64,000 bases of DNA from Octopus bimaculoides (taxonomy: Eukaryota). The stretch covers positions 42,149,000 to 42,212,999 of the forward strand of contig NC_068985.1 in the NCBI RefSeq assembly GCF_001194135.2, in the 5' to 3' direction. Below are positions 8,936-59,485 of this stretch, one piece after another (position 1 is the stretch's first letter; each line of letters opens with the position of its first letter). Made by a program: the position numbers and the translations under genes. A model generated the notes under the pieces. That model did not search any database. It saw nothing but the letters and a program-made list of their open reading frames with translations, and was not told where the DNA came from.

Positions 8936-11900
8936 GCGGAGATGGAAAAAACTGGAATAAGTCTGCATTTAACAAGGATTCAAAAGACTTCAATATTGCC
9001 ACACAAGATTATATCCCGCATGATCTAAATTATCGGACAAAAATATTCCAAGGGTCTCAGAGCAAGAAAGACAGCTATAAATCAACGAAGAGAACGTTCT
9101 TCGAAAATCCAGCCTCAACTCATGCAGAAAGCGCTGATAGTTCACAAGAATTTAACATGAGACGTTATTATAATACAATGAGTTCTTTGCGAAATACTAG
9201 GAGGAATAGTAGAGATAAACAAACGGTGAATGGGAAAAATTCGACAGAGAAAAACGTTGGTCGGCAAGAGCCAAATGCAAAGAACTATAAAAGACCAATG
9301 AAAATTATGACCTTAAACAAAAACGGTCGGTTGAATATGCGCAATAAGAAGACTGACATCCTGCAAATGTACAGGCAACTACTTTTAAAAACTGGACAAA
9401 TGGAAAAATTTAGAAAGTTAGGAAAAGTTAAGCAACGTCAGTTTATTCGACGTTTAATGCTTAAAAACCGCAAGATAGCTAAATTAAAAACTCAAAATGA
9501 AATGAACCATATTCATCAGATAAGTCGAGTACCGGAGCTAAATCAAGATACTGAGACAAGTCATGTGACTGGGCTGAGTCATGTATCTGAAAAAGCAACA
9601 ACTGAAAGTTCAAACAGATTCTCAAATACTCCAACTTCTAGAAATACCACGTTGTTGAATGTTTGGACAGATGGGATGCACAATGACAAACACGTTTCTT
9701 TAAAGAATGAACCCAGTTATCGAAGCACATCTCATCCTCTAAAATCTTACAAAAAAGATTATAGATATTCGCCGGAAGAAAATCAAAGATCACAGAAACA
9801 TAAAAAGGAACAAGTTATGCAGCAAAAGTTCGATAGTTTCCAACGTGAGAAAGGAAAAAATAGAAAACCATTTCTTGTCATGACTTCTCCAAATATGATA
9901 GATTCCGGAACACATCAACCAAATGCATTTATGTTTAATCAAAATGGCGATGTCGTCCATTACAGAGGCTCTTCTTATCAAACGATTTATCCCGAATTTG
10001 AACAACAAAGATCATTTACCTTCAAAAATAATATGCCATATCTAAGAGATATTCCTAACACATCACAAGCTGATATTAAGACTAAAAAAGAAGAGGAAAA
10101 TTCGTCTGAAAACAAAATAGACGATGAAAATAATGCGAAAAAAAGACAAGATGAAAACGCAGACAACGAAGATGATGTAGATAATGAAATAAAGAAATCA
10201 TCTGCAGAAGATAAAGACAAGTATGATTCTCATCAGCAGACTCAAACCCGACTCCCTGCCACCTTTACAATACGAGCTAAAAATTACAATGATATGAGTC
10301 CAAGCTTTCGGACACCTCGATACGATTTTACTCAACAATTTAATCGGCGCCAAAAGAAAAAACGTTTAATTCAAAGAGGAAAACTTCATTTACCTTCAAA
10401 AAACCTTCCTCTTAAAACTTTTAGAAATAAGTTCAGAGTAAATCGAAGACAAAACCGATATGGCATGCTCAGAGAAACACCACCTTGGTCTAAGTTCCGT
10501 GCAAATATTGGTCAGCCTTCTCAGTTTGTCATGATTTCAAGCGACCGTAGAAAAGATATGCCAATTCCTAGGAAGGAAGATCAAGATTCCTCGGAAGACA
10601 CTTCAGAAAGTGAACAAAGTCAATTTTCCCCTCCTTACTATCACACGTTGTCCCCGGGTCTAAATTCAATGGATATTGCCGGGGGGTTTCAATATAACTA
10701 TCATCCTTATGCTGGTAACGATCAACTAGATCAGCAAAACAAAGTGGATTATTATCAACAATATCCCATTACACATGTTGAGGACAATAACGAAGATAGC
10801 TCTGATGAAAACACTTCTATAGAGCAAGAGCAAGGAGACGAGACAGATTACCAAGAACCACCCTCATATGTAGGCATGCACGGGTCAGATGTTGCTCTTG
10901 ATACAGGTAGAGTAAATGAAGTGAACCATTTTTACGGTGAAAGTACGATTGTACCTTTAGGTCAATTGAAACATGATCAAGATGATGACGACCAGGATGA
11001 CAATATCAACTCCTCAGAGAACGCAGTGGAAGAAACATCGGAAGAGCAAGATAATCAAAAACAAATGCCGGAAAATATCCACAAAAATCGTGATTCACCT
11101 GACACTCTCCTAATCGTACTAGATAATGACTCAAAGACAAAGAAAAATATTGATAATGAAGAACATAATCAATTCAAACAATCCTCTGCCGAAGACTTTA
11201 CTGAAGGTAAAAAAGCTAGTCCAATAATGAAAGCCGATCACTCATTATCAAATGGAATATTAGTTATACTAGATAATGATGGAGAAAAACCAATAAGCAC
11301 AATAAAACCCACTCCAGCAATAGAGAAAAGTAAACACTTTCCTGAAGATAAACCTAAGCAATCTGCAAAGACAATTAAAATAAACGTTAGTAGTAATTCT
11401 AGTTCTCTTGAAATGTCTAACAAATACTCGTATTCATTTTTAAACGAGACCTCAAATAAACATTCATATAAACCTCTGAATATCACAAAAAGCAATGAAT
11501 CATCAAACAACAGCAGTAACAATTTCACCAAAACTATAACCTCTATTAATGATATTTCCTTTAGTTTAAATAGTTCTGATCAGAGTCATCGACCATCTTT
11601 TAGTGTAAACAGTTCTAATCAACTTTACAGAACATCTTTGAAGCCCCTGCGGCCATCAAGTGAAAAGAAAAATTCTTTGAATAATCTTTTGATTGAATTA
11701 GGAACTAAAGATAACATATTCAACATCCGAACGCCCAGTAGAGGAATTAGCCAACGTGCTGGAGATTACCATAAAGGAATATCGGAAAGCAAATCACTAA
11801 GAAAAGATCAACGTTTCCGACTTGTAAACAAATCACGCCCTGTTACAAACCGTTACAAAAGCAATGGGCGTAAAATAAAAAAGAAATTTAGGTACAAAAA

Positions 11901-14900
11901 CATTGGCCATCCTTTCAAAAACGTTCGTCGCACTGGAAATAGTAACATTTCTATGAGGAAAAGATTTAGGAAATTATACCCAAATATTCACTTCCAAGCT
12001 GATACTGAACTGTTTGGTAACCGTGTTAGAGAAGTCGTAGAAATTCCTGACATTGATTGGACATTAAATGGATCGACTTTGGAAGGTGATAGCATTAATT
12101 TATTGAAGAAATCAAAATCAACTGAAAATAAAACCATAACCTCCGGTCATTTACCTCAAGAAGATCTTTCAGAAAGATTACCTCAAAATAATAATGTAAT
12201 CCGAGGTATACATGCCATCAACACAAATATATTAGATTCCCAGAAAACCGATTCCCAGTCCATTGAAGATGACAACAGATACCGGAAAATACCCTTGGAG
12301 TATCCAAAAGATGTTGACGAATACAGACTTGATCACTTACATGGAATTCCGAACGTGTTCACTGTGGTGTCAAATACGAAAGATGATGATGACGATGATG
12401 ATTCTGCTGAATATAGTCAGTCGAATCATAACCTAGTGATCAACACGATTAAGTATAAATCACCCAATATAGATATGAATCCCATTGATTCTTTAAATCC
12501 TGTCTATTTAAATACCTTAAAAGATATTCGAAACTTTGTAGATACACACAGCGAAGATAAAGATGATTTCAATGAAAGACTAGATGAAGAAAGAGAAGAA
12601 GTGCAAGAAAATATGGAATACTCAAATAAACAGCCAGCATTTCATCCACTTTTGGCGAGAGGCAGAGAAGATTCGTATAAGACCGTATCTAATATTCAGT
12701 TAAATAATGAAAAGATGTCTCCTGTTTACAGGGAAATAAGCGGCTCACAAGAAGAATTTCCCGATATTGAGAGAGATCATGTTATTGGCGACTATCATTA
12801 TCCAAAATTCGATCAATTGAAAACAAAGATACAGCTTCCCACTGAACTATACCAAGATAGACTATATGGAATCGATTCGGATGACGAAAATGAAGAATTG
12901 CCGCTGATGTACAGAGATATAATGTACAAAAAGCGCTTATCCAAACACGACAATAATAGAATGTCGCATGATAATGACGATACATTTTCTACATCGGAAA
13001 GAGTAAACACAATGAACACAAATAAGCAAAATAATCTGAACAATTTCTATGTGCTGGGCAATAAGCCAAGTAAATTAAACCATACAGTTGGTGATTTCCA
13101 CAACAATAGTAGAATAAAAGTCAACCACCCACTAATGTCACACAATTCAATAAGTGCTCTCTATGGACAATCTCCATTAAACCCTGACGAAACATATGAT
13201 TCAGTCGAGGATAGCAACTTGGACTCCACTAGTATGGCGGATGAATTAAACTATCGCAATAAAAAACGGAAGTTGATTTCTTCAAGTTCACACAGTTTGC
13301 ATAATAAAATACTTGTTACAGGCGCTGATACACCTGGATTATTAGGTTCAACGAAAAGTGAACGAACATTAAACGAGAATCGTCTGAAAAATACTTTGCA
13401 AAAGAAAACTTCCAGCCTTTTCAAGAGTCATCTACGTAACCGTGATAAATTGTCAGATGATGCTTCCATCCGTTCTATAGAAGGGGTTCGATCTGACCAA
13501 GAATTTTATAGAACCTCGTCTGGCAGAAAAAGTCAGATTCTCGGTCAAGAAAATCGGGAAATCTATTTGCCCAGAGATTTTCATAGCTCCGAAATGATAT
13601 GGAGAAACGGAAAAAGTCCTTTACGTGGGATAGAGACTCAAGATATACCTCGTCAATATTGGCGAATTTATCAACTTCTAAAGAATGGAAATTTACCAGA
13701 AAAATACAGACCGTTATATTATCACTTAAAAGACGAAATAGATAAAATTGCCAATAAATCTTCGCAAGGTGACATCTATAAAACCAATGCTCATAATAAC
13801 CTTTCAGATCCAAATGAAACCTTGAATGAATTTGATATAAAATTAACTAATAGATCTGGTAGTTCTCCATTGTGGGACAACAAAAATGAAGTAGATATTC
13901 TTAAGAGAAACGAGTATGAGAAGAAAACAGATAAGGAAGCTACCGATATTGGTCTAGCAATGCAAAAGAGCAAAAAGAAATTGAGTGTAGTTGATGTTCA
14001 TGATGACACACAAATCGCTTTAGAAGGAGTTTATCTGAAGGGTGGTTTAGACTCTAATAATAAGGATTTGGGGACACCAGAATTTGGTGGTCGGCCATTG
14101 GAAGATGAAAGTATTTCTGGAGATTTTGGAACCAATACATTTGAGGAAAATAATAAAAACTGGAGGGATACAAGTTTCGATATTGGCATTTCAAATCCAA
14201 AGTGGAACGATACATTAGCTTATGAAGAATCCAGGATGAAGGAGAAAACTGCATTTCTGAATGATAAGGACTACAATATGAATAGCATGGATTACCAAAA
14301 ACTGCACAAAAACTTTTCTGATTATGAATTAACAAAAGGCCATAAGAGCGAAAACAGTTATCCGTTAGTTGATGAACAATTGCATAAAACACAATATAAA
14401 AATTACTTCGATGAAAATAGTCCTGGACTCTTTGAGAATGGAGTTCATTTTGGGGTTCATGGCAAAGCAGATAAAGGCCAGCAGAAACACGATATAAATA
14501 CAAATTCTCGAGGACCAAACAGCAAAGTTCTCGGTCCTAATGATCAAGAGAGTATACAGTATCCCACAGAAAACGGAAGTCCACTCACGGATATTATTGA
14601 GAATCATCAATATGAAAACGTATATAATTATCATGGGAGTATATATGACCCATACGATTACCTAGGGGAAGTGGATATCAGCCAACTGGACCCAGTTGAA
14701 AAGGCTTTTCAAATACCTTACAACAGTGTTCCAGAGAGTACACTCACTAAATTTGATAATCAAGGAAATCATTTAGAATCTTCAGATTTAACAAACACAA
14801 ATTTACAAAAAAATAGGTTAATGAAAGACAATTCAAATTTATTGACCCAGTATAGTGATGAAATGAATTTAAACGGTCGGGTAAGCCCAGAAAAACAGAC

Positions 14901-17900
14901 CCCTAGTATCGATAAAGATACAGAAAAGATCAAGAGCATGAGTAGAACCATAAACATAGATAAACCAGGAATCTTTGGTAGTGATTTTCAAGAGAAATCT
15001 GATCAAGTTGTATTAGATAAATATTTATCACATGATGTATTCCAAAAAGTATACGAAAGTCAAGGGGAAGGTAAACGCTTACATGAAAGCCATGAGGGAA
15101 GAAAACACTTGCAAGACAGCCACGGGGAAAAAAAACGCTTGCAAGACACCCATGGGGAAAGAAAACACGTGCAAGACAGCCATGGGGAAAGAAAACACTT
15201 GCAAGACAGCCACGGGGAAAGAAAACGCTTGCAAGACACCCATGGGGAAAGAAAACATTTGCAAGACACCCATGGGGAAAGAAAACATTTGCAAGACAAC
15301 CACGGGGAAATAAAACACTTGCAAGACAGCCATGAGGGAAGAAAATATTTGCAAGACACCCATGGGGAAAGAAAACACTTGCAAGACAGCCATGGAGAAA
15401 GAAAACACTTGCAAGACACCCATGGGGAAAGAAAACACGCACACGACAATCGTAGAGAAAGAAAGCAAGGACAAGGTAGCCATGAAGAGAAAAAATATTT
15501 ACATGGTAATTTTTGGGAAGGAAAGCATTCTCAAGACAGTTCTAGAGGAGATAGAAAACCTTCGCATGATAGTCTTTGGGAAGGAAAGCACTCAAAACAC
15601 AGTCGCAGAAGAGCAAAGCCGTTTCAACACAGTCGCAGTGAAGCAAAAATTCTACAAAGCCATAGGGATATTAATGATGATGAAGATGATAGTAAAACAC
15701 AAGAAATAGATATTGCCAAGCCAAATGATAATGAGTTAACAGAAGACATTGACGATGGCGATGCAAAACATTATTCTGGAAATAACTACTATTCTGATAT
15801 CATTGTCCAGCCATTAGGCTTAACAGAGAAAAACTTGCCAAACACATTTCAAATATCTCCAAGTAACGTCTTTTCAACATCGGCAACAATAATACATCGG
15901 AATAAAACTACAGAGGAGAGCAGAACTGATGCTAAAGAAACTGATGTTAAATATATTGATCACAAAATGTTTTCTGTAACTCAGAAGAAAATTTTCAAAT
16001 CATCGTTACCTGTCTCTGTAAGTAACTTAGAAGGTACTGACAACAAATGGCTTTATTCTAGTACGGATAACGGAGATGCAATTCGAAATGTCTCTTCCGA
16101 AGAAAAACAAGGAAAACAATTTGTTGACGTAGGTGTTCCGCTGACGTCTTCACATCCATCACAATTTCAGAATATCTCTAGGACATCAGATGCTATTGAT
16201 ATAGATGGAAGTCGATTTAAAGAAATAAGCAATATTACAGAAGAGACTGAATCTCAAGGAAATCAGTCATTGTTTTTAGATAGAATTTCTTTTGAACCAA
16301 CTTTATCGGATTTGGATAGTACGTCTGTCAAAATAAAGAAGTACAACACTCACCAAAGATTAGTTACATTTGGTAAGGATGACCACCAAGTATCAAAACA
16401 TGGCTCGTCTGAGTTAGGAGGAATTTCCAGGAGTGATTTCAATTCAAGCCAAATATATGAGGACCCGACATTTCGCGGAGAGATGGTACAGGCTGATGAT
16501 GCAAATGCGACAGAAATTCCACAACTAACATCAGCAAATGACTTTTTGATATACGATGAGAATTATGATCTTTTACCTGAAGAAAGTTCGAGAGACGAAA
16601 AGAACAGCAGTGAAAATTTAGATGAAGTGCATGATGATAGCATGAACACCTCTGTGCATGTTGAAGGGACTGTAGAAAAATGGGGACGTGGCGGACATTC
16701 GATTAAACCAACAACATCACTATCTGATGATAAAAACATCGATGACATTGCAAAGAAAGACACTGAAAACGATCCGTTAAAATCTCAACCATCGTACATG
16801 GATGAGAGTGAACATCTATTAGCAGAGATAGAACTCGGAGAGTCATTTCCTCAGTTAGAGGATAAAAAGATACCCCATACACCAGAAGAGGAATACCGTG
16901 AACATCAACATCACATGGGTGCCTCCCCTATTAACCGAGATATTCATCAGCTACATCAAATCTTACCAGATATTCTGGTTGAAGAACCTGATATCTCACA
17001 CAAACCAACTGTTCTTCAAACGACAACTGCTTTGAAAGACACTGAAAAGCATGTTAAAATTTCTGAAACAGTAAAAAAAGAAACTGTTCCAGCAATTGAC
17101 ATTGACAAACAGGTGTTCTTTAAGGGATCAGATATAGATAAAGAAAAGAAAAGAATCACTGGAAGAACAGAAGCATCGAAACTGGACTTTTTTGAACACG
17201 ATTCGTTTCAGAAGCCCGAAACACTCATGATGGAGACAACTGAAGAAACTCAAACAGATGCTAAGGATTCTCCGTCTACAAATATTATTGAACAAGAAGT
17301 AACTGGAGAAAGAACTGAAGAGAACATTTTACAAACAGCTGAAGACAAAATACTTCCAACTGATCTCGGTTTTAAAACAAAAGAAGACTCATTTGATTCT
17401 CATAAGAAATCTACTCATGGAGTTAGATCTGAAATACCTTCACTAGGACTTAACACTAAATTTATAACTTATGAAGGATCTGCCTTACCAACAATAACAG
17501 CAGGGCTTCAAGAAAGTCAGTCCTCATTCCTCCATTCATCTAATAATTCCGTCCCAAAAATTGAGACACAAGATGTGCTAGGTAAATTAATCACTGAACA
17601 AGGTGAGAAAACGTCTAAAGAAAGTTATACGGGAACAACACGTGATATCAAGGCTGATCCAGACATGAAAACGTTAGGATTGCTTCAATCTAGGAAAGAG
17701 GTGAAGACATTCAATAAAACAGGCCTGCAAGACAAACTTGATATTGTTAAATCGGATACTACTTTGCTTGGTATCGAAGAACTTATAATACATGAATCTA
17801 AACCACAAAGCACATTGCAAGGTAGTGATAAATCACAAAGTCAACACCATGAATATCTAGATGGTATTTTACAAAGTACTGATAAATCTAGAAGCCGTCA

Positions 17901-20900
17901 ACCGACTACAAAGGTTGGTACTTTACAGAGTGGGGAACCATTTGAAACAGATGTTACCATTAAGGGTTCTGGTAAATTAAAAGAATATGAAGCACCTGCA
18001 AAATATGTTACATTACAGGGTAGACAGACATCAATGAAATCTAAATCAACAGTAATGGATGGTACTGCACACGATATTGATATATCGAGAAGTCCTAAAA
18101 CAATTCAGATTAATGATAGCATATATAGCAGTGGCAGTAAATTACATGGCTATGAATCATCGACACAGCTCCATGATACTTATGAACATAAAGCTACTCA
18201 TGTAGGAGACAGCACTTCATATAGTAGGGAGAAATCAAAAAAATCTGAAACAACTCTGCAAGACAGTATTTCTCAGGCTACAGAAGAAAAACGACTACCT
18301 AGCTTATCTCATCTAGATGGCGCATCACTTGGTGCAGACATATCAAAAATATATGTGGAGCCAACACAAGCAGTCAGTACCTTGAGAGATACATCTCAAT
18401 TACATGAAGCTTCATATGGTAGAGGTGATTCAAGAGGACATACACCGATTCAAGTAAATCATACTATGCAACATATAGAAGAATTAAGAGGACAACAACC
18501 AACTCAGTTATATGGTACCTTGCCGGGTAAAGATGAACATAAACACACACCAGTTCAGCTAGATGACGCATTGCTTGGCATTGATGAATCACATAAACTT
18601 GAATTGTCCCATACAGACAATACCTCACAAGGTCCAGAGAAAGAAATATTTCACGAGGCGAAACTACATAATGCTTCCCATAGTATAGATGAAGTTAGAA
18701 GACATGAGATGATTAAATTGCAAAATATTTCATATGACATTGAGGAATCGAAGAGGAATGAATCGACCCAGGTACTCAACACATCACTTAGTATTGATAA
18801 ATTAAAAGAACATAAACCCATTCAACTGAACACTACCTTAGATAGTACAGATATATCGCATAGACTTGGACCTTCTCTACTAGATGGTAGCTCACATGCT
18901 ACTAGTGAATTCTACAGGCAGGAATCAACTATTGTAGACTATGCTTTGCATGGTATACATGAATCAAAAGAATACGAACCAACTCAAATAGATGGTACGT
19001 CGAACGTTGGTACAAGTAAACTGAATGAATATGAACCGACTATCGATGGTACTTTGCATGATACAAGTGAATTATTTAAGCATAATCAATCTCAGTTATA
19101 TGGTACTTCACATGGTACAGACGCATTTAAAAGGCAAGAACCGGTTCAGTTAGAGGGTACCGTGAACATTGGTTCAGATAAACAGGGCGAATATGAACCG
19201 ACTCAACTAAGTGGTACTTCTCATGATACAGGACGACTTATTAATGATAAATCATCTCTGTTAGATGGTGTTTCAGATGGATTTAATAAGTCCCATGGGC
19301 AGGAACTGATTCAAATAGATGGTATAGATGGTATCTCATACGATACAGGTGGTTTGCATGGACCTAAACTCTCTAAATTAGATGGTACCTTACGTGATAC
19401 AGGTGAGCTGTATGGACACAAGTCAACAGAACTAGCTAGTACTCTTCATGGACATAAACCGACTCAAACAGATGACATCTCTCATATTACAAAAGGATTA
19501 TCTGAACAAGAAGCATCACTGCTAGATAGTTCTACTTATAGTACAGGTGAATTAAATACTCATGGACCAACTCAGTTCGAAAGCATCCCATCACATAGTA
19601 TAGATGGACTACAAAGTATAGGTGGACTACAACTGTCTCAATTAGATCGTAGAAGACAGGAAACAGATGAACTACCTGGACACAAACCATCATCTCCAGA
19701 TAGTACTCCATATAGTACAGATGGACTGCATGGATATGAATCGTCTCAAGTGGATGGTATTTCGTATAGAATAAAAGAATCAACAAGTCATAAATTAACT
19801 CAAGCAAATGGTAGCTTGTATAATGTAACAGAATCAAGAAACCATTCAGAACCGCACCAGTATGATACTTGGCATAGTCTAAATAAATATGAAACTACTC
19901 AATCAGATGGTAATAGACAAAGTAAGGGTATCTTTAGAAGTAGTGAAACTGTTAGATCGGATGTTGACTTACCTTTTAACGAAACATCAAAGCACGGAGA
20001 AGCAACGAAAACAGATGATGGTATTAAATTAACTAGTTATCGAATACCGAAACTAACTGGTGTATCTCTGGAAAGTGATGGGTCCTCGAGACAACATGGT
20101 ACATTACATGTTACAGATGATAATTTACAGGATTCTAAAAGTAATGTAATGGGTGATAGCTCACATGTTACAGACAAAATGAAAAGCCACAGACAATTTA
20201 AATTTGATCATACAGTGAGCAGTTCGGACAAATCTAGAATTACTCAGTCAGCTAAACAATATATTAGCTTGGATGATACTGAGAAATCGAAAACATTGGA
20301 TAGTACTTGGCGTAGAACTGATGAGTTGGGAATGTTTCAAACGCCTAAAACTGACATTATATATCACAGTACTGAAAGACCAAAGAGTTATGAACCTGTA
20401 GGGACATATGACATGTTGCATGGTTCAACTAATATAGATGGTACCTTACAAGATACTGATATATTGAGAGGTTACGATCCATCACAACCAGATGCTAGCC
20501 CATATAGTACAGATAAAGAAGGAGTGTATGTGTCAAAAACTGATGAAGCCTCACATGGAACCGACAAAATAATCAGTTATGATCCAACGAACATTTTCGG
20601 TACCTCACATGATGCAGATAGAATAAAAAGCTCTTATACAATGCAAGTTGATGACACACCACATCATACATCGAAATATATCGATAGAATAAAGAGTTAT
20701 GATCCGACAAAAGTGAGTGATGATTTCCAAGTTAGTGTTAAATCAAAATTTTCTGAACCAACTAAGACAGGAACTTCCATTGCTGAATCAGTGTTAGATA
20801 AACATACACCAACCACATATTCAAAATCTGGTGATGGGATTCTCAGAGAAATCAGTGGATATGAGTTTTTACATCCAGGTTATCGGACAACTATTAAATC

Positions 20901-22918
20901 AAACGGCAGAAGTTGGATAAAGGTACCACCATTAGATAATAGCTTTAGAAAAGAAATCCAAGATACTGATCACCAGATAAGCGATGACACCTTGTATCAA
21001 ACCTCTTTTACTGATAAGCATTTTGACAGAGACGGGATAACGATTTCAGCAACAAAACAAATCAAAGGAGAAAAGGCAGTAACATACGGTGACGTAAGCA
21101 AAAAAGTCGATAGAGGTGAACCGAAATTTGTTAGTTCAACGTCAGAACCATCAAAAGATGGTAAAGTCTTGTCATTGGATGGGGAAACGCAAAAAAAAAC
21201 AGACGAGAATTATGTTGATAGTCATAAGATGCCTATAGACATGCCTGGCGTGAAAACAGAAACTTCTACTGATGCAACATTGAAACTGATTCATGACACT
21301 AGTCTTTCTTCTTCTAAGGAGACTGGACAACATTCGGTTTCTGAACAAACTCATGCCTATCCGTCTCTGGTCACTAGATCGCCAGTCGATAAACAGAAGA
21401 CAGAAAAAGACCTTGCCATTAATGCATCAGCCAAACGGACTGACGATTTATCTTCAGTTATTTTCACTGACAGTATTACTAAAGAGGTGCTATCGACTAA
21501 ATCTGAAGACTTCCCCAAAGAAAATGTGATGGATAGTTTTTCATCTCTTAAACCAAAAGTATCATCTTCTAAAACTTCTGCCCCACACCAAACATTTTCA
21601 GGCATTTCATCAATATTAGACAAGAAACAAGATCAAAAGCAATTAAAAACACTTCTTGATCTTCCTTCAACTTTATTATTCGGTCAGCTAATGGATGTTG
21701 GTCTTACTTCAAAAGGTTCACATCCTGAAAGTCAAGACACGCATTCATCAATAGAGGTTGATGTTGACCGTACAGAACATTTTCCTGGTTTTGATGCACT
21801 CCGACAACTAACGGGATCTGCTCCAAAAGAAAAAGAGAAAATTGTTACAGAAATTGCTTCGGATTTATTTCAGACCAAGCACCAAGATGTGAAACCCTTT
21901 ATTGAAAAGAAAATCCCGACTGTTAAAACTCCAACTGTAAAATTCAAACAGAGTGTTGATAAGTCACGATTTAATGGTCTCAAGAATGTTTCTCTCCGAC
22001 ATCCTGGTAAATCCAACGAAAGTATATTTTCTGACTTTGATACTGAATCTGACCAAATTCCTATTCAACATACCATAACAATGACTCCTCACACTAAAGC
22101 TGAAGGTAGTGTCACAGATATTGATCACAAGTTAAAATCACCTGAAAGAGATGATAGAAAACTTCATAAAATAACGCAGCCATACAGCATTAAAGTAGAA
22201 CCTGGTTTAGAAACGGATTTAATCGATGAAGGTATTCCACTTCCAGAATACACAAGCTTTGTCAATTACCAAGATTCTATTGATCCCGGAGCATCAACAA
22301 GTGAGGTACCTATCCATATACAGAGCACATTTAACAAAAGTTTCACAAAAACAGATGAAAAAGAGAAGTTATTTCCCGAAATGTTACACAGTAATATTCC
22401 ATCATACGAAACACCTGTCCTTGATTTTACAGAAGATGATCGGAAAATCCTTATGGATAGAACAACCCCTAATGCTCATTTAAATATTTTAAGTTCTAAG
22501 AAACAGCGCTTTCATGCTAGTTATTCTCCAGATCAGTATCAAAAACCAACAAAAACTGGAAGACCATACGCTACAACTGGATATCCTTCCATGATTGAAC
22601 ATTTTGACCGAAAAGATATCATGAAATTCCATATTCCAGGTGATACTACAATCAGTACACATCCTGAAAGTACTCTTCCGCACACACCAAAGATTCCTAC
22701 GGAAAAAACAATGCAGTTTAGGAAAGGAACTCCCGGTATAACTAATAATATGAAATCTTTGAGACAACAGTCTGATAGATTTTTGCAGATAGTCACTCCA
22801 TCAATAAGAAGAAGTGATATAAAAAATATATGGGAAGACAATTCAAATTTAATGTTAAACTTATATGAAACTTCGAGATTTACAAAAGCTTCCTTTCTTC
22901 GCAAAAACGAATCTGCTT
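8936..22918 (+). CDS. Giant internal coding exon (13,983 bp, 4,661 codons) of a zonadhesin/FCGBP/mucin-like secreted protein; low-complexity, probably disordered
   Basis: Acceptor tttacAG at 8934-35 lies just after an in-frame TAA (8926-28). The frame is open from 8938 (GDGKNWNK...) into the 9157 ORF. Donor gctt|GTGAGT at 22919. Phase 1 at both ends, length divisible by 3. Confidence 0.9.
15049..15600 (+). repeat. Coding 30-bp tandem repeat (10 aa, consensus LQD[S/T]HGERKH), about 12 core copies plus degenerate flanks
   Basis: Repeated cttgcaagacacccatggggaaagaaaaca; visible in the translation. Confidence 0.95.
18100..20700 (+). repeat. Coding degenerate 18-aa (54-bp) repeat, consensus roughly ELHGYEPTQLDGTSHDTD
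   Basis: Units such as KQGEYEPTQLSGTSHDTG, GLHGPKLSKLDGTLRDTG, ELPGHKPSSPDSTPYSTD, GLHGYESSQVDGISYRIK. Confidence 0.75.
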
Positions 22919-23155
22919 GTGAGTATAAATGTTTTTTTTTCTTCTTTATTCTAATCTCCTTGAGAAAATTTTTTAGACTTTTGAAAGTACAGAGCCTAGA
23001 AATTTCATTTTCATACCTGACTGACTTTCAGCACAAAAATATTTATATAACAAAAAATTGTTTAATCAAACTATCCCTCGGTCTAATAGTTGTCAAAGTT
23101 TCTGTGATACAATCTTTAGTTGTCATAGCAAGTAATCAAAATAGATGAGGATACA

Positions 23156-23188
<33 letters not shown>

Positions 23189-23505
23189 GATGATGAGTAT
23201 TCTAAATAATTTGGAGTAATAATATGAGCAAATATATTAATACTGATCTTATATTAGCGTTAGTACACATATTCGTAGTACACATATTCTCAGTTGGGAA
23301 ATAGAGTTTCGGATATACATACATTCGTACATATGTATGTATTCATTCCAGTGGGTAACATGTTCAAAGAAGCTATGTCCGGTCACTTAAAATAAAAAAA
23401 TTTAAAGATGAACCTGAGAGTGAATAAACGTTTAACTCATAATCGTTAGTCCGACTATATATATANNNNNNNNNNNNNNNNNNNNNNNNNNNNNNNNNNN
23501 NNNNA

Positions 23506-23789
23506 TATTAATCGAAATGTACGATGTAACAAATCCATTACGGCTGATCTTACCAATCAGTTTCGCATTAGAAGTTCAACGGAGTGTTAGGTAAGCCTGC
23601 GCTCATCAGAGCTAGCGGTTATAGAATGAAATATGAAGCTCACCATATTTCATTTCATAACGGCTATCTCTGATGAGCGCAAGGTTACATAATCGGACTG
23701 TTACCTAACGCTCTGTTGAACCCCTAGTAGGAAACCAATTGGTAAGATCAGCCGTGACAGATATATAATACTGTACGCTTCGATTAATA
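23506..23789. repeat. 284-bp fold-back palindrome (MITE-like hairpin)
   Basis: Arm pairs: tattaatcgaa/ttcgattaata; acggctgatcttaccaat/attggtaagatcagccgt; gcgctcatcagag/ctctgatgagcgc; atgaaatatg/catatttcat. Loop near 23636-23643. Confidence 0.9.
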
Positions 23790-25392: not shown

Positions 25393-26475
25393 TACGATGG
25401 GAAGCTGAAAAGTTTCTGGCTTTCGGTAAAAGAAAATACAGAAGGATCAATTAATTATGATTTTAATCAACATATTCCCCTTTCGAATTCACACACTTAT
25501 TGCAGTGGTCCTTCAGTTTTTTTTTAAGCCCTGTAAAAAAATCGGAAGGTTGGGCTTTCAACCAGGCCTCAGTAGCAGCGATCACTTCCAAATAGGAGTG
25601 AAATTTCGTTCCCTTGAGATGTTTCTTCAGTTGTGGAAAGAGCTGATAGTTGGAAGGAGCCAAGTCAGGTGAGTAAGGTAGGTGGTCTGCCAATTCGAAG
25701 CTAAAGTCGCATATTTTCCAGCCGACTTCTGAGTCCGAAACTTCTTGGGACGCAGCGAACCGCTGTGACACCACTCCACTGATTGCTGCTCGGTCTATGG
25801 ATCATAATGACGAAGACAAGTTTCATCATTGGTGACTAAACGAGCCGTAAAATCAGCCACTCTCGCTGCAAACCGGTCAAAAATCGCCTTTGATGTCGAC
25901 ACTGGAGCGCTTCTGATCTACGTTCAGGCATTTCGGTACTCATTTTGCGGATAGCTTTCTCATGCCCACAATGTTATGAATGATATGGCCAACTCTTTAG
26001 CAAGAAATCCCCAGCATCCTAGTTATGACTTTAGCTGAAATCTAGCGGTCCTCGAGAATCATGACGTGCACAGCGTCGGCTTTGTCCTCTGTAGTCGAGG
26101 AAGTTGACTGTCCTGACCGGGGTTCATCTATGACTTCGAAATGACCAGTCCGAAACCTTAGCATCCAGATTTTCACTGTAGAGTAAAATGGGAAGCCAAC
26201 CTTCAAGACTCCCTTCATCTTGCCATGGATTTTCGCCGCTTCTTTATCATCCAAAAAGAGAAATTTCATGGCCGCTCGTATTTCAATTTTTCCAAAATTC
26301 ACTATAGGAGCTGCCATCTTGCGCTAAATCTGCAAGAAAGAGAAAGATGTATATTGTATACTATCAAGATCTGTTGCCTATCTTCTAATAGGTTCTCCTA
26401 CCACTCCTGTAAAGGTACCAGCTCTACCCTTTCACTATACCCTTAAAGCCAGGAACTTTCCAGCAGCCCCTCGCA
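25393..26475 (-). mobile_element. Decayed mariner (DD34D, irritans-like TIRs)
   Basis: Imperfect TIRs tacgatgggaagctgaaaagtttctggcttt and aaagccaggaactttccagcagcccctcgca. Fragments IEIRAAMKFLFL...EPRSG and HLPYSPDLAPSNYQLFPQLKKHLKG. Confidence 0.85.
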
Positions 26476-26956: not shown

Positions 26957-27205
26957 GCTATGAGTCTTGTTTGGAAGGTCATAAGTACTGCGACCATATG
27001 TTTGGAACTCGCTTCCGTAAATGTATGCTGCAACTCGGGCGGGAAAATCTACTGAAGTATTATACGATGTGTAATACAGTGATGTGTCGTGAAACTGGGG
27101 ACATGGAGCAATGGAAGAACGATGCATGCGACGTCATCGATGCATTGGCACACGAGTGTGAAATAATTGGTATCAAAGTATCATGGCGAGAAGTAACCAA
27201 GTGTT
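26957..27205 (+). CDS. Exon: C8 domain 1 (C|YESCLEGHKYCDHMF...WREVTKC)
   Basis: ttttcAG acceptor and GTAAGT donor, phase 1/1. The split codon T|GC gives a Cys that aligns with the first Cys of C8 domain 2, and the Cys spacing and W-R motif match the second C8. Confidence 0.88.
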
Positions 27206-27344: not shown

Positions 27345-30275
<2,931 letters not shown>

Positions 30276-33561: not shown

Positions 33562-33562
33562 A

Positions 33563-33652
<90 letters not shown>

Positions 33653-39642: not shown

Positions 39643-39845
39643 ATAAAAAATGTCCCGAGAATATGACGTTCAAGCATAACGTATCTCTGTGTAGAATAAC
39701 CTGTGACAACTATAATACAAAAATAAAGTGTCCTACCGATGAAACGGAGTCTCGGTGTGACTGCAGAGACGGTTATGTTCTGAGTAAAGAAACGTGCGTT
39801 CCAGTCCAAGAATGTGGTTGCATCTACCAAGACTACTTCCTGGAG
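39643..39845 (+). CDS. Exon: TIL domain 1 (KKCPENMTF...CDCRDGYVLSKETCVPVQECGCIY)
   Basis: tttttttAG acceptor, GT donor at 39846, phase 1/0. Canonical TIL pattern CxCxxGYVL..CV...CGC. Confidence 0.9.
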
Positions 39846-41728: not shown

Positions 41729-41879
41729 GTTGGTCAGACGGTAACATTATTTGGCTGTCATATGATGGCTGTATGTGTTAGGGACAAGTTTGGTTGGAGT
41801 AATATAGAGTACCATGAACTACCAGGATGTAGCCCACGAGAATCATGCCATCTTGTCAACGAAAGTTATGAATGCATTG
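41729..41879 (+). CDS. Exon: TILa-like segment (VGQTVTLFGCHMMAVC...CSPRESCHLVNESYECI)
   Basis: tatttcAG acceptor, GTAGGT donor, phase 0/1. Paralogous to exon 54951-55158. Confidence 0.85.
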
Positions 41880-43180: not shown

Positions 43181-43282
43181 TTCATTGTGGAGGTGAAGTA
43201 TGTCATGAAAATGCTACATGTGAAGAAAACAAATGTAGATGCCATGTAGGACTGTATGGTGATGGAGTTACAACATGTAGAA
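43181..43282 (+). CDS. Exon: EGF-like domain (HCGGEVCHENATCEENKCRCHVGLYGDGVTTCR)
   Basis: cattttcAG acceptor, GTAAGT donor, phase 1/1. Six-Cys EGF pattern with CxC..G..GDG..C. Not in the ORF track because it is too short. Confidence 0.88.
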
Positions 43283-44225: not shown

Positions 44226-44488
44226 GCACCCTAGGTGTATGTTCCTGTCTGGTGTCTGGATTATCTCGTTACCGAACATACGACGGTCAGATGATCCACT
44301 ACCTCTCTACATGTCCTGTAGAATTAACAACAACTGTTGGTCAGAGTGATGACACAAAGCTGTCTGTCTACTCCACTACGCTGTTCAGTAATGAACTCAT
44401 GCTGTCATTTGGAACACGGCGCTACAGGACGGCGAATGTCACAATAAATGGACTGAATATTTATATGGACACGAGTGGTAAAGCTTAT
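44226..44488 (+). CDS. Exon: VWD domain, N-terminal half (CSCLVSGLSRYRTYDGQMIHYLSTCPVEL...)
   Basis: ttcttctcacAG acceptor, GTAAGT donor, phase 1/0. The C...Y.TYDG....Y..TC VWD signature is present. Confidence 0.88.
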
Positions 44489-44903: not shown

Positions 44904-46185
44904 TTAGGTTGTCAAGAAACTTCATGCGGAATTTTTAATTTTAGTTTTAAATGATGTATTTTCAAATTAATTTTCGTTAAATTACTTTGACTTTATATAT
45001 CATTTTAAAGCCCGTTTTTCGCTCTATCTAATCGTGTTACTCTTTTTCTTTTTGAATAATTAGGCCATTTTTTTCCGGAACGTTGAATACAACATGGACA
45101 AAAAGCAAATTCGCACAATTTTCTTATTCCAGTTCAAGCTAGGCCGAAAAGCTGCTGAAACAGCTCGCGATATCAACGATGTGTTTGGCCCAGGAACCAC
45201 TAATGAACGTACAGCACAATGGTGGTTCAAGAAATTTCGTAGCGGTGACGAGAGTCTTGAAGATGATAAGCGTAGTGGTCGGCCATCGGATGTTGACAAC
45301 TATCAACTAAGAGCCTTAGTCGAAGCCAATCCACGCACAACTGTTCGAGAGCTTGCTTCTGAATTAGACGTAACATATACGACAATTTCCTACCACTTGA
45401 AAGAGATTGGTAAAACAAAAATACTTGAGAAATGGGTACCGCTCAAATTGAACGACAAAAAAAAAACGCCATTTCGAAGTGTTGTCTTCCCTTCTTTTAC
45501 GCAACAAGAACAACCCATTTCTCGACCGGATTGTGACTTGCGATGAAAAGTGGATTCTTTACGACAACCGGCGACGCTCAGCTCAGTGGTTGAACACCGA
45601 CGAAGCTCCACGGCACTTCCCAAAGCCAAAGTTGCACCAAAAGAAGGTCATGGTGATTGTTTGGTGGTCTGCGACCGGTCTCATCTATCACAGTTTTTTG
45701 GATCCAGGCGAAACCATTACGGCGGAGTACTGTCAGCAAATGGATGAAATGCATAAGAAACTCCAACAACAACAGCCAGCATTGATCAATAGAAAAGGAC
45801 CAATTCTTCTACACGACAACGCTCGGCCGCATGTCGCACAACTGACCCTGCAGAAGTTGAACGAATTGGGCTATGAAACTCTGTCTCATCCGCCATACTC
45901 ACCAGGCCTCTCGCTTACCGACTACCACTTTTTCAAGCATCTCGACAACTCCCTGCGTGAGAAATGCTTCAAAAACCAAGATGATGCCAAACACGCCTTC
46001 AACGACTTCATCGCTACCAGAACGCAAGATTTTTACGTTACTGGCATAAATAAACTTGTTTCGCGTTGGCAAAAGTGTGTTGATTCTGATAGTGTTTATT
46101 TCGATGAATAAAGTTTCGTTTGAGCCAAGATATGTGCATCTGAATTTAAAGGTTAAAAACCGCAAGAACTTTCTTGACAACCTAA
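44904..46185 (+). mobile_element. Full-length 1,282-bp mariner (DD34D, Hsmar1/cecropia-like), one frameshift from intact
   Basis: TIRs ttaggttgtcaagaaa and tttcttgacaacctaa with TA TSD. Transposase 45094-46111: [31 protein letters not shown] (34-residue spacing). Frameshift at A10, 45457-45466. Confidence 0.93.
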
Positions 46186-47222: not shown

Positions 47223-47503
47223 GTGAACGACGTGAAGATAACGTTACCTTTCAAAGACAATCAAATCAATGTGAGTATAAGCTACACAGCAGGATGGATA
47301 ACAATCTGCTCAGAAGATGGAGTGACAGTCAGTTATGACAGCAAACATCGAATTAAGATGTTCTTACCAAAGGAATACCGAGGTAAACTGACTGGCATCT
47401 GTGGAAACTGTAACGGTGTACATGACGAGCTCAAAACTAGACATGGCGTAACTACGACGAATTCTGAAATCATTGGCAATAGCTATTCACTGAATACTTC
47501 ACA
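47223..47503 (+). CDS. Exon: VWD domain, C-terminal half (VNDVKITLP...LPKEYRGKLTGICGNCNG...IIGNSY)
   Basis: ctattcAG acceptor, GTAAGT donor, phase 0/2. VWD motifs LP..Y.G...GICGN and GNS(Y/W). Confidence 0.9.
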
Positions 47504-48825: not shown

Positions 48826-49091
48826 TTCTTGCGGGCCAGTATCTATCAAGAAATGCGAAAGAGGTGTTAAACGCTGTGAACTCATGCGATCGGGAATGTT
48901 TGCAGACTGTCATCCTTATTTAGATGATGGTCTTGTACAAAGTTACTATGATTCGTGTATGCATATGACCTGTGCATTTAGATCCTACACCGACTACATG
49001 GATAAGCTAACTTGTGCTGCACTGGAGAGCTTAGACACTGAATGCATGAGCCGTGGTTATATCGTGGAATGGAGATCACAGCGACTGTGCC
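48826..49091 (+). CDS. Exon: C8 domain 2 (SCGPVSIKKC...FADCHPYL...YYDSCMHMTC...ECMSRGYIVEWRSQRLC)
   Basis: tttcttaccAG-type pyrimidine-rich acceptor, GTAAGT donor, phase 2/1 matching its neighbours. Classic C8 motifs F..CH..L, Y..C...C, C...G....WR....C. Confidence 0.9.
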
Positions 49092-52231: not shown

Positions 52232-52428
52232 CTGTAAGTTGTTGTAGACCAATGATGTATAACCAACACGTTAATGAAACAGAAGAAAGTTGTGTTCCCT
52301 CACTAGAAGTCTGTCCAATAAGACCTGTAGATGGTTGTACATGTGCTGAAGGATATGTATTAGATAATAACAAATGTGTTCTCCCTCGAGACTGTGGCTG
52401 TTGGTACAACAATTCTCTCTATATTCAG
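52232..52428 (+). CDS. Exon: TIL domain 2 (...DGCTCAEGYVLDNNKCVLPRDCGCWY)
   Basis: ctgtttcAG acceptor, GTAATG donor, phase 1/0. TIL pattern. Confidence 0.9.
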
Positions 52429-53628: not shown

Positions 53629-54735
53629 CATCATCATAATCATCATTTAACGCCTGTTGTTCATGATGGCATGGGCTGGACTGTTTGACCAGGGCTGTTT
53701 GACCAGGGCTGTTTGACCAGGGCTGTTTGACCAGGGCTGTTTGACCAGGGCTGTTTGACCAGGGCTGGCAAGCTGGAAAGCTGCATCAGACTCCAGTCTC
53801 ATTTGACATGGTTTTCTATGGCTGGATGCCCTTCCTAATGCCAACCACTCTGAGAGTGTAGTGGGTACTTTTATGTGCCACTGGCACAGGTGCCATTCAT
53901 GTGAAACCAGTATCTACCATGACTGCAATTTTGCTTGGCTTGATGGGTCTTCTTCTCAAGCACAACATAATGCCAAACGTCTTGGTCATTGCCTCTGTGA
54001 GGCCCAAGACTCAAAAGGAACCCAGCCACTTTGTCTCCATGAGGCCCAATGCTCAAAAGGAACTCAGTCACTTTGCCTCCGTGAGGCCTAACACTTGAAA
54101 GGTGCTCTTTATGTGCCATCAGTACAAGTCTCAGTTGCATGACACCAGCATCAGCCATGACTATAACTTCACTTAGCTTGACTGGTCTTCTGAAGCACAG
54201 CATATTACCAAAGGTCTCAGTCACTAGTCATTGCCTCTGTGAGGTTCAAAATTCATGCTTCATCACCTCATTCCATGTCTTCCTGGGTCTACCTCTGCCA
54301 CAGGTTCCCTTCACAGTTACAGATCAGCACTTTTTTACACAGCTATTCTCATCCATACACATCACATGACCATATTAGTGCAGTTGTCTCTCTTGCACAC
54401 CACATCCGATGCGTCTTATACCTAACTTTTCTATCAAGATGCTTACACTCTGTCAAACATGAATACTGACATTGCACATCCAGCAAAGCATACTGGCTTC
54501 ATTTCTTTCAAACCTATGCATTTCCTTAGCTGTCACAGCCCATGTTTCACTGCCATGTAGCATAGCTGTTTGCACACAGGTGTCATACAATCTCCCGTTC
54601 ACTCTGAGAGGTAGGCCCTTTGTTGCCAGTAGAGGTAGGAGCTCTCTGAACTTTGCCCAGCCTAATCTTATTCTCACAGCTATACTCTTGGAGCATCCAT
54701 CTCCACTACTATCTTGGTCACCTAGATTCATATTC
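53629..54735 (-). mobile_element. RTE-clade LINE 3' fragment with (GAT)n tail
   Basis: GDGCSKSIAVRIRLGWAKFRELLPLL...GRLYDTCVQTAMLHGSETWAV...ASMLCWMCNV (54453-54737). The 3' tail contains ggctggatgcccttcct..cgccaacc on the plus strand. Confidence 0.85.
53681..53764. repeat. Six perfect copies of 14-mer CTGTTTGACCAGGG
   Basis: Direct reading. Confidence 0.95.
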
Positions 54736-54950: not shown

Positions 54951-55158
54951 CTTGGTGAAACAATACATTTACCCGGTTGTAATACAATGGTCCAATGTCG
55001 TAAGGTTGCAACAGGCAAAAGAAATCTTGTAATAACGAATTTACCTGACGGCTGTGGTAACAACTCTATGTGCATTCTAAAAGACCACAAATACCAATGT
55101 ATATGTGAAGAAGGATTTGCTCGCAATAAGAATGACACATTCTGTCTTAAAATACCAG
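54951..55158 (+). CDS. Exon: TILa-like plus EGF-like segment (LGETIHLPGC...CGNNSMCILKDHKYQCICEEGFARNKNDTFC)
   Basis: ttattcctAG acceptor, GTAAAC donor, phase 0/1. Confidence 0.87.
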
Positions 55159-56829: not shown

Positions 56830-57365
56830 CATATCTCAGTGTGGCTTTATACATCCCTGTGCCATTGTACTTACCCTTGTATCCCTCTTCACATCCCTGT
56901 TTCACTGTACATATCTATATGCCACCTTCCACATCACTGGATCTCTGTACACACCCTTATCTCACTAAACACATCTTTGTAACCCTCTATAAATCACTGT
57001 GTCACAATACCCATTTCTGTATCATTGTACACGTTACTGTGTAACTAAACACATCTCTGTACTACTGTACACGTTCTTGTGCCCTTGTGTACATCCATGT
57101 GTCACTGTATGCATCTCTGAATCAGTGTACCCGTCCCTTGTACACATCCGTGTCGCTATCCACATCCCTGTGTCCTTGTACACTTCACTGTGTCATTGTA
57201 CATATCTCTGAGTCCCTGTACAACGTCCTTGTGTTACTATATACATTACTCAGTCACTGTACTCATTGTTGTGTCACTGTACATATCCTTGTGTTACTGC
57301 ACACACCTCTGACATTGTACACACCACTTTCTCTCTATACACAACACTGTGTCCATGTACCCAAA
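56830..57365. repeat. Degenerate ~20-bp minisatellite (gtacacatccctgtgtcact-like)
   Basis: Recurrent cacatc.ctg / gtcactgtac motifs over about 530 bp. Confidence 0.7.
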
Positions 57366-58548
57366 AATGTCCCCAATCCCCTGGGAAATCACCTCACGCC
57401 AACATAAAGCAAGATAGATAGATAGATAGAAACGGAGAGAGGTAATCTAAGGGAAATAACTTCCAACTAGTCTTTTGTAACTACAGAGTAACTTTCCTTG
57501 TTGTGTACACTCGAATTAACAGCAGCTTTCAGAATTACATATTACTTTGACACTCTGTTTTTGCAGATATCAGTTGGTTTTTAGTTTTCATTGGTTCCTG
57601 ATTTTCGAAATATTTTCCTTCAAAATAGAAAGAGTCACTTTAGTAAGCTCTGAGAGGTTTGTCTGAAAGTTCTCTCAGTGCATGTTAGTCCTAATAAGTT
57701 CTTTGCCTTATTTCCCTCAAAGTCCAGTTTCTCCACACAGTTTTTTGTCTTTTCCAATAATTTCCTTTATGCATGTGTGTGTGTGTGTNNNNNNNNNNGG
57801 GGGGGGGGGGTAAAGAAAGGAAAGAAAGATTGAAAATACACTTAGAGTCTTTGAAAAAGATTTATATACATTTACTTAACAAGTTACACAATATCTCAAA
57901 ATTTTAAAAAATAGTGTGAGATGGAGAGATCTGAAGCTAAGTTGTATTTGTCTCAACTTTGACAAGAGTTTGATCAATTGAGCCCTTTTATGGGGAGAGT
58001 ATGGCTCAAATTGTCATCAGTTAAAGTTGGCCACAAGTTTAGAGGACCATGTACTTGCATTAAAGATAATTAAACCATAAGTTAAGGCTGTGTTAGGCCA
58101 GTTATGATGTCATACAGTAGTAAGAACAACAAGAACACACACACACACACATATTTTGAATGGTGAATTTGTTAACTTTGGCTTGTATTAGATAAGGATA
58201 AACAATTTATTACTGTTACTAAATTTTCTTCAGCTAACTTCACATTCCATGACTACCACTGGGATCGATCAGGTATCAGACAAGTATGAAACCTTCAGGG
58301 GTGTTTGACCTCGTGATTGGCATGAACTGATTAGATTTGGGGATTGATCAGATACCAGACAAGAGTTCTGGATTATTTTTCCAGTTTTTTTACTTAATTT
58401 TTGAGAGCAGTCGGGTTCATTCTTAGTATTCTCGCTTGTGAGAGCAGTCGAGTTTATTTCAGATATTCTCATTTTAAAAATCATCTCCAGCTAATTGTTG
58501 AGAGGACATTGGTGTTGCCTTGGTGGAGGTTTGCGCTCCCTGAGTGTT

Positions 58549-58604
<56 letters not shown>

Positions 58605-58816
58605 GACAGTTAGCTGGCAGAATCGTTTGCATGCCGGGTGAAATTCTTATAGGTATTTCATCTGTCTTTACATTCTGAGTTCAAATTCCGCTGGGGTTGA
58701 CTTTGCCTTTCATCCTTTTTGGGTCAATAAACTAAGTACCAGTCAAGCACTGGGGTCAATGTAATCAACTAGTCCCCTCCTCCAAAATGTCAGGCCTTAT
58801 GCCTAGAGTAGAAAGG

Positions 58817-58852
<36 letters not shown>

Positions 58853-58922
58853 ATCATTGTTGCTACTACTACTACTACTACTGCTAAAACTGTATTCATA
58901 ATGGTTTTAATTTCTTGTTCAG

Positions 58923-59485
58923 AATGTGGTGATCAACCAGTGGATGTTGTATTTGTGGTGGATGTCTCTGGCAGTATTAATGTTACCGGACTGAACAGTA
59001 CCAAACATTTCCTCACACATTTTATTAACTCAACAAACATAGGAAAGAACAACATGCAAATTAGCATCTTGTTGTTCAATGATAAACCTCACAGCTTATT
59101 TCAGTTGAACAGATACACAGAGAAAAAACAGATGCTTGATGCTGTCTATAAGATTGGACCACCCGAAGGAACTACTTACCTGGGACGGGCACTTGTGTTT
59201 GTTGCTTTGGTCAGTTTGCAAGAGAAAATGGGTGCTAGAGAACATGTGAACCGAGCTGTTGTTATTTTGACAGATGGTGTTCTCCATGATGCGGAGAGAG
59301 CTGAAAGATGGGGTGCACTGCTTAGAAGACAAAAGAAAGCGGAACTGTTTGCCATTGGTGTTGGAGAAGCTGACCCAGCACAACTACAAAGATTAACTAG
59401 AAACAGAAATAATGTTTTTTATGTTCGAGAATATGTTCAGTTGAATGGAATTATGGATATCTTACTGCAGAGTGTCTGTATGTAA
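58923..59485 (+). CDS. Last coding exon: VWA domain with MIDAS; ends ...LLQSVCM*
   Basis: ttcttgttcAG acceptor, phase 1. Motifs DVVFVVDVSGS (DxSxS), GTTYLGRAL (T), VILTDG (D), LFAIGVG. TAA at 59483-85. The cumulative frame over all 11 exons is exact. Confidence 0.92.

Follow-up and report, generated by a model that had tools for sequence, protein, structure and literature searches.

In a window of 64,000 nucleotides of the Octopus bimaculoides genome (NCBI RefSeq assembly GCF_001194135.2, contig NC_068985.1, positions 42,149,000 to 42,212,999 of the forward strand; positions below are those of the window), we identified a giant, cysteine-free exon followed on the same strand by ten cysteine-dense exons that encode a cassette of VWD, C8, TIL, EGF-like and VWA domains. 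The giant exon is genuine coding DNA and is under selection. The reading that we favor, with moderate confidence, is that these eleven exons form a single gene, whose product would join a very long disordered region to a cassette of D assemblies (VWD-C8-TIL-E units) and VWA in a secreted material. Within this reading, the splice that links the giant exon to the first cassette exon (22918|26957) is likely to be real, and the single-gene model likely to hold, as judged from splice sites, exon phases and the adjacency of the two parts.

The coding status of the giant exon is borne out by its reading frame, its composition and its lack of repeats. The frame that contains it is open from 8929 to 23145 (+; 4,739 codons), is free of N and exceeds all others in the window by a wide margin, all remaining open stretches of more than 250 codons being artefacts that span runs of N. 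It opens 7 nt 5' of a consensus acceptor (ttacag|GCGGAG, 8935|8936), and the exon closes on a GTGAGT donor (TCTGCTT|GTGAGT, 22918|22919), with one codon base coming from each side; these 13,983 bp match exactly the stop-free exon outlined in the initial annotation. Within these boundaries there are no in-frame stops, compared with 218 to 607 across the five other frames, and, given the base composition of the exon or of the introns, 4,661 codons would stay open with a probability of 1e-153 to 1e-137. Cysteine is likewise missing from all 4,660 residues, as against ~60 expected from position-specific base composition (P ~1e-26); all three cysteines of the open frame fall past the donor, where the translation turns Phe/Leu/Ile/Cys-rich and intron-like. 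Furthermore, the exon holds no run of N and no microsatellite, and self-comparison of the window detected no dispersed repeat in it, whereas 20% of the non-N bases outside it lie in within-window repeats. Tandem Repeats Finder placed two overlapping rows inside the exon, both for one in-frame 30-bp array, and all others outside. The giant exon is thus coding, since it combines the absence of stops, of cysteines and of interspersed repeats with repeat-laden flanks, and the earlier view that it is under selection is upheld.

We considered three further explanations for all or part of this exon and discarded them. A chance open reading frame (ORF) is ruled out by the probability of the open frame (P ~1e-137), and an ORF derived from a transposon or virus by the lack of any transposase, reverse transcriptase or capsid domain and of repeat copies elsewhere in the window. 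A vestigial VWD domain at the C-terminal end of the exon is ruled out as well, as this end gave no Pfam or tblastn signal and holds no cysteine.

The ten downstream exons (Table 1) encode 62 cysteines in 827 residues (7.5%), in keeping with the initial annotation, which had set a cysteine-dense cassette against a cysteine-free exon. All eleven exons have consensus splice sites, and their phases chain without conflict into a product of 5,487 aa (~624 kDa) with no internal stop, whose 5' end lies beyond the window. Exon structure and Pfam together give the order C8-TIL-E-EGF-VWD-C8-TIL-E/EGF-VWA, and the VWD domain, which is split over exons 6 and 7, is matched at 5.4e-17 on the joined protein. 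The proposed zonadhesin/FCGBP-type D assembly ending in VWA was therefore recovered, with both C8 and both TIL domains, the VWD, the EGF and the VWA recognized by Pfam; the TILa label, in contrast, found no Pfam match in either post-TIL module and rests on position after TIL. These two modules are homologous to each other and sit at the E-module position of relatives. The metal ion-dependent adhesion site (MIDAS) of the VWA domain is complete, with VVDVSGS followed by EGTTYLG and then ILTDG (DxSxS...T...D). A feature that the initial annotation had not raised is that the first C8 domain has no VWD before it in the window.

In both D units, the junction after C8 (phase 1, right past the last cysteine) and the junction after TIL (phase 0) are alike, which argues that exons 2 to 4 are contiguous and that nothing was lost in the gapped intron 2. 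No extra VWD, C8 or TIL exon was found by tblastn in 1-8935, in intron 1 or 3' of the VWA exon using a Mytilus relative and the cassette as queries, and two scans of 1-8935 revealed no credible signal-peptide first exon with a phase-1 donor; these results place the 5' end of the gene outside the window. At the other end, an AATAAA at 59731-59736 (+), ~246 nt past the TAA stop, fits a gene end but may be due to chance in this A+T-rich region, and alternative donors at 59477 and 59481 mean that the gene could extend past exon 11. Cysteine density and tblastn disclosed no cysteine-rich or further domain exon in 59486-64000, which is partly gap and received no dedicated transmembrane or Pfam scan. 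The CTCK, VWC and CysD domains had no Pfam match in either the cassette or the giant exon.

The region encoded by the giant exon is probably intrinsically disordered, as the initial annotation had held, on the evidence of composition and structure prediction. Its residues are dominated by S (11.2%), K (8.8%), D (8.5%), T (7.9%), E (7.1%), L (7.0%), N (6.1%) and I (5.6%), followed by G and Q (5.2% each), R (4.7%), P (4.5%) and H (4.2%), with C at 0; S, T and P together reach 23.6%, which is not the composition of a Pro/Thr/Ser (PTS) mucin domain and agrees with the earlier distinction from such domains. Charge alternates in blocks, with residues 1-200 and 801-1000 basic (the first 200 residues carrying a net charge of +14.5 per 100) and residues 601-800 and 2401-2800 acidic. 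Mean hydropathy (0.379) falls below the Uversky boundary for its net charge (0.421), whereas that of the cassette (0.470) lies above its own boundary, and no Pfam family was recognized anywhere in the exon. AlphaFold2 (AF2) predictions of residues 1-1200 and 3461-4660 gave a mean predicted local distance difference test score (pLDDT) of 32.6 and 32.2, with no residue at 70 or above and few isolated helices, although low pLDDT is weak evidence for disorder in single-sequence runs such as these. The exon also encodes 61 N-x-S/T sequons. Two RGD tripeptides are present (15544-15552 and 18421-18429, +; residues 2203 and 3162), about the number expected by chance.

The initial annotation described the exon as mostly non-repetitive, a description that has to be amended. 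Two tandem arrays (Table 1) account for ~26% of it (~1,200 residues), while self-BLAST and autocorrelation detected no self-similarity in the rest. The units of the decapeptide array repeat at a DNA period of 30 bp with 86% identity, and the ratio of nonsynonymous to synonymous differences (pN/pS) is ~0.47 among 12 units. The 18-residue repeats, in which D, G, T, S and H abound, are evident as an autocorrelation peak at lag 18, ~6 standard deviations over other lags, and as self-BLAST matches down to 1e-13.

Table 1. Exons of the proposed gene and features inside the giant exon (window positions).
Feature	Position	Strand	Remarks
Giant exon	8936..22918	+	4,660 full codons, ~530 kDa, isoelectric point 6.05, phase 1-1, Cys-free, predicted disordered
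Basic Lys/Arg-rich stretch	9346..9519	+	Exon residues 137-194; AF2 helix with block pLDDT 55-64, among the few predicted helices
Decapeptide array [ST]HGERKHLQD	15058..15657	+	Residues ~2041-2240, ~17-20 in-frame copies
Degenerate 18-residue repeats	17788..20787	+	Residues ~2951-3950, ~1,000 residues, ~55 copies, near xPTQLDGTSHDTxELxxH
Exon 2, C8 (Pfam 1.2e-6)	26957..27205	+	Partial D assembly; acceptor and donor in phase 1
Exon 3, TIL (Pfam 2e-8)	39643..39845	+	
Exon 4, post-TIL module (E/TILa position)	41729..41879	+	34.5% identical to its counterpart at 54951-55158
Exon 5, EGF-like (weak EGF_3 match)	43181..43282	+	
Exon 6, N-terminal half of VWD	44226..44488	+	SGLSRYRTYDG where relatives read GDPH
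Exon 7, C-terminal half of VWD, including GICGNCNG motif	47223..47503	+	Pfam VWD 2.6e-10
Exon 8, second C8 (Pfam 1.9e-12)	48826..49091	+	
Exon 9, second TIL (Pfam 2.1e-4; tblastn to Mytilus protein)	52232..52428	+	
Exon 10, post-TIL module and EGF (Pfam EGF 5e-5)	54951..55158	+	
Exon 11, VWA (Pfam 3.1e-34)	58923..59485	+	MIDAS DVSGS, flanking Cys, TAA stop 59483-59485

The protein was initially thought to be undescribed, which is true in part. The giant ORF is already present in UniProt, as it is 99-100% identical to A0A0L8GLG0 (A0A0L8GLG0_OCTBM, "Uncharacterized protein", Octopus bimaculoides, 4,519 aa), but this entry is uncharacterized and modelled without the cassette. The model begins at a Met at 9178, runs through the donor to a stop at 23145 and drops two in-frame GT..AG pieces of the giant exon, at 13768-14079 (312 nt) and 19546-19644 (99 nt), which could be predictor artefacts or reflect real internal splicing ("exitrons"). 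A word-indexed search of 5.8 billion clustered proteins with the whole giant exon returned its own UniProt entry alone, and residues 851-2030 of the exon, run in a full HMMER scan against 1.84 billion representatives, likewise retrieved only themselves. Both collections appear to be poor in cephalopod proteins, since the cassette query retrieved no octopus protein, and the lack of a homologue does not therefore show that the giant exon is lineage-specific. We found no paper on A0A0L8GLG0 or on the giant exon in octopus, and papers on octopus skin mucus and oviducal gland mention mucins or zonadhesin only generically.

Several properties of the junction between the giant exon and exon 2 support their union in a single gene. 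The two lie 4 kb apart on a common strand, with a gap of 39 N (23466-23504) in the intron that would join them; the donor, GTGAGT, matches the consensus, the exon-2 acceptor has a strong polypyrimidine tract, and the phases match, which would occur by chance in one case in three. Neither part appears to be complete by itself. Exon 2 has no Met and begins mid-codon in phase 1, and the giant frame remains open, with unchanged composition, for the 80 codons that separate the UniProt Met from the upstream acceptor. Furthermore, no signal peptide follows any early Met of the giant ORF, and the cassette requires oxidative folding, so that each part would need the other, or further 5' exons. The avoidance of cysteine in the giant exon would also be accounted for if this region travels with disulfide-rich modules, which makes sense of the selection observed.

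Other points weigh against this single-gene reading. The junction is deduced from splice consensus, phase, adjacency and the inability of either part to stand alone, and the lone public model that we found, A0A0L8GLG0, assigns the giant ORF to a gene of its own. The first C8 domain is atypical in having no preceding VWD in the window, and a giant exon in phase 1-1 can be skipped in frame, so that an upstream VWD exon might normally partner the C8 exon. Any signal peptide, like the 5' end of the gene, lies beyond the window; scaffold continuity across the five gaps of intron 2 is assumed; and the low pLDDT values, coming from predictions made without an alignment, count for little as evidence of disorder.

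The public annotation embodies one rival explanation, in which the locus holds two genes: a stand-alone giant ORF (A0A0L8GLG0, Met 9178 to stop 23145) and a cassette gene whose first exons went unrecognized or lie in gaps. The split in UniProt follows these lines, the first C8 domain lacks its VWD, and the gap at 23466-23504 falls between the two parts. We nevertheless consider two genes unlikely, because the 80 open codons before the UniProt Met keep the same composition back to a consensus acceptor, and because the 76 codons that close the UniProt model, which start exactly at the GTGAGT donor, are Phe/Leu/Cys-rich and intron-like. Exon 2, for its part, has no Met and shares the phase of the giant-exon donor, and 22919-26956 shows no signal-peptide or other domain exon from which a separate cassette gene could start. 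The complete lack of cysteine where ~60 would be expected also fits passage through an oxidizing secretory route beside disulfide-rich modules.

A second rival accepts a single gene but makes the giant exon optional. In this case the common isoform would splice the C8 exon to an upstream VWD exon that the window does not cover, yielding a conventional zonadhesin-like protein, and the isoform with the giant exon would be tissue- or stage-specific. Symmetric phases and a C8 exon orphaned from its VWD speak for such an arrangement, as does the end of the giant exon, which falls within 1-2 codons of the point that closes the last VWD exon of the second D unit. However, C8 is preceded by a phase-1 junction at the giant exon and by a phase-2 junction in the second unit, and the upstream exons that this explanation calls for lie beyond the window. 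Moreover, 4,661 open, cysteine-free codons indicate that translation of the exon is frequent enough for strong selection to act on it, and we regard optional use as improbable.

The same locus could, in principle, be the product of a scaffolding artefact, with the giant exon and some or all of the cassette misjoined in a gappy draft assembly. The window (59% A+T among called bases) contains 13 runs of N, five of which fall in the 12.4-kb intron 2 between C8 and TIL (27609-28459, 30020-30159, 36010-36112, 36454-37158 and 38487-39138), with others in intron 3 (39979-40602) and intron 10 (57789-57798). All flagged gaps are intronic and no exon or reading frame crosses one, although small exons could be hidden in them and intron lengths are estimates. 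Only 39 N separate the giant exon from the C8 exon; the exons agree in strand, in the order of their domains and in phase at all ten junctions; and the C8|TIL and TIL|E junctions of the first D unit recur in the second. The D units are 26-34% identical and hence are not assembly duplicates. Taken together, these observations make a misjoin very improbable.

The introns and flanks contain several repetitive elements. A mariner/Mos1-type transposase remnant (45064-46108, +; HTH_48 2.3e-18, Transposase_1 3.7e-28) lies between exons 6 and 7, in the intron that divides the VWD domain, and is decayed, as its HTH_48 and Transposase_1 parts are in different frames; a weak C-terminal fragment of a Tc1/mariner-type DDE_3 domain (33349-33564, +; E 0.039) lies beside a TA microsatellite in intron 2. 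At 1025-1624 (+), a unit of ~223 bp resembling a short interspersed nuclear element (SINE) is present in 2.7 tandem copies, and its signature SEFKFCRGRLYLSSFRG recurs, by visual inspection of the translations, near 3575-4054, 7861-7998 and 58642-58761. This pattern suggests that the SINE-like unit is dispersed in the flanks and introns and not in the giant exon. Intronic minisatellites comprise a 20-bp unit in ~25 copies (59% match; 56851-57353), a perfect 14-bp unit in 6 copies (53681-53767) and a 42-bp unit in 2.7 copies (53989-54102). A search against Rfam gave no match in the window.

Under the single-gene reading, a function can be proposed from the roles that these modules play in von Willebrand factor (VWF), mucins, FCGBP and mussel byssal VWA proteins. 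In the first three of these, D assemblies bring about association through disulfides or in a manner that depends on pH or calcium; VWA domains with a MIDAS attach to ligands in the matrix; and long hydrophilic regions that are unfolded retain water and fill space. The octopus protein would enter the secretory pathway, where its D assemblies and VWA domain could provide disulfide-linked or metal-dependent self-association and matrix attachment at the C-terminal end, while the huge, charged, unfolded region would make up the bulk of the molecule as a hydrated spacer or gel-forming brush. The product would be a secreted extracellular polymer or gel, a coat or an adhesive, cross-linked or anchored through its C-terminal end. 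Both secretion and material function are thus inferred by analogy with these proteins, and the glue, egg-case or mucus role envisaged in the initial annotation is a reasonable inference from domain grammar.

The architecture is best explained as a mucin/zonadhesin-like design with a long region that carries charge and abounds in Ser, Thr, His, Lys and Asp, instead of being a Pro/Thr/Ser glycan carrier. A bolder proposal would be that an orphan domain specific to octopods or cephalopods has replaced the VWD of the first D assembly, so that a ~530-kDa cysteine-free polyampholyte would form a hydrogel or adhesive through charge and His/Lys/Asp chemistry and not through mucin-type O-glycans, as a "glycan-poor mucin analogue" with no relatives outside the lineage; we deem this doubtful.

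If the junction is confirmed, the public gene model is wrong, and the protein is not a 4,519-aa orphan but one of at least 624 kDa. The orphan would then gain a context, as a secreted region whose anchors are D assemblies and a VWA domain, and the locus would offer a clear mucin-like architecture with a charged, His-rich long region in place of a Pro/Thr/Ser-rich one. Such a protein would be relevant to the mucus, egg-attachment and adhesive materials of cephalopods, and to the growth of giant exons from short repeats. The architecture is an unusual variant of a mucin-like secreted protein and not a new class or system; giant disordered exons beside VWD assemblies are a familiar design, which opens no long-standing question by itself.

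To place the cassette among known systems, we compared it with solved structures and protein collections. The best solved-structure match was FCGBP (8rde_A, E 1.1e-117), aligned as one stretch over query residues 57-612, followed by collagen VI alpha-3 (VWA; 5e-79 summed over six stretches), MUC5AC, VWF, MUC2 and the mussel proximal thread matrix protein 1 (PTMP1). Relatives in protein collections include a "Zonadhesin" from Mytilus coruscus (29% identity over 72% of the cassette), a "zonadhesin-like" protein from Mizuhopecten yessoensis and a Pinctada VWFD protein, and the cassette profile also retrieved a fish IgGFc-binding-like protein. The bivalve zonadhesin-like proteins are ~29% identical to the cassette over 72-74% of its length and have the EGF-VWD-C8-TIL-E unit in common with it. 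The Mytilus protein aligns unit for unit but has the VWD before the first C8 that is missing in octopus, and it reads SGDPHYRTYDG where the octopus VWD reads SGLSRYRTYDG, so that the GDPH autocleavage motif is not present in the latter.

The bivalve relatives also carry a counterpart of the long region, on a far smaller scale. Cysteine-free N-terminal regions rich in Lys, His, Ser and Glu (e.g. GHSKEKHSKER) occupy residues 1-158 in Mytilus (158 aa) and 20-427 in Mizuhopecten (408 aa) and lie ahead of the D assemblies and of a WSC or SUEL-lectin domain; in Mizuhopecten the region is followed by SUEL-lectin and Methyltransf_FA-like domains. These regions resemble the basic N-terminal part and the decapeptide array of the octopus exon in composition, with no significant sequence similarity (best E 0.075). 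This likeness suggests that, in the octopus giant exon, a feature of this family of mollusc proteins may have been expanded to an extreme degree.

In mammalian zonadhesin, MAM domains and then mucin repeats precede a partial D0 that is followed by full D domains (PMC1325057). The octopus model follows a like order, in which a low-complexity region leads into a partial D assembly (C8-TIL-E, without VWD), an EGF domain and a VWD-C8-TIL-E unit. It differs in the length of the long region (4,660 aa, compared with 158-408 aa in bivalves and a short PTS repeat in mammals) and in ending with EGF, VWA and a stop instead of a transmembrane tail, none having been found, if with no dedicated transmembrane scan. 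MAM, WSC and lectin domains were not seen in the octopus window, outside of which the 5' end of the gene lies.

In FCGBP, tandem VWD-C8-TIL assemblies act as a mucus cross-linker. The octopus cassette has such assemblies in common with FCGBP, together with sequence similarity, but FCGBP contains many D assemblies with GDPH autocleavage sites and neither a giant disordered region nor a VWA domain, whereas the octopus model has one and a half D assemblies, no GDPH and one VWA. The gel-forming mucins place a giant central exon between D assemblies (family overview in PMC4948705). Like MUC2, MUC5AC, MUC5B, MUC19 and otogelin, the octopus model devotes one giant exon to a large region, and the D assemblies of MUC5AC and MUC2 match the octopus cassette at 1e-42 and 3e-25; a role as a hydrated polymer is, by analogy, likely to be common to both. 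In contrast to these mucins, the octopus model has no PTS domain (Pro 4.5%), CysD, VWC or cystine knot, and no N-terminal D1-D3 in the window.

VWF combines D assemblies with VWA domains, as does the octopus model, and its D and A domains match at ~1e-39 and ~1e-12, respectively; the octopus model has a single VWA and neither VWC nor cystine knot, and VWF has no giant disordered region. PTMP1, which matches the octopus VWA at 3.6e-21, and collagen VI are matrix-binding VWA proteins of structural materials, built from VWA domains only or from VWA and collagen and, unlike the octopus model, lacking D assemblies and a giant disordered exon. Judged by sequence similarity, the cassette itself is an ordinary FCGBP/zonadhesin-like D assembly with a MIDAS-bearing VWA, and the predicted octopus protein as a whole fits a loose FCGBP/zonadhesin-like group of mollusc VWD-C8-TIL proteins, with a VWA domain added as in VWF.

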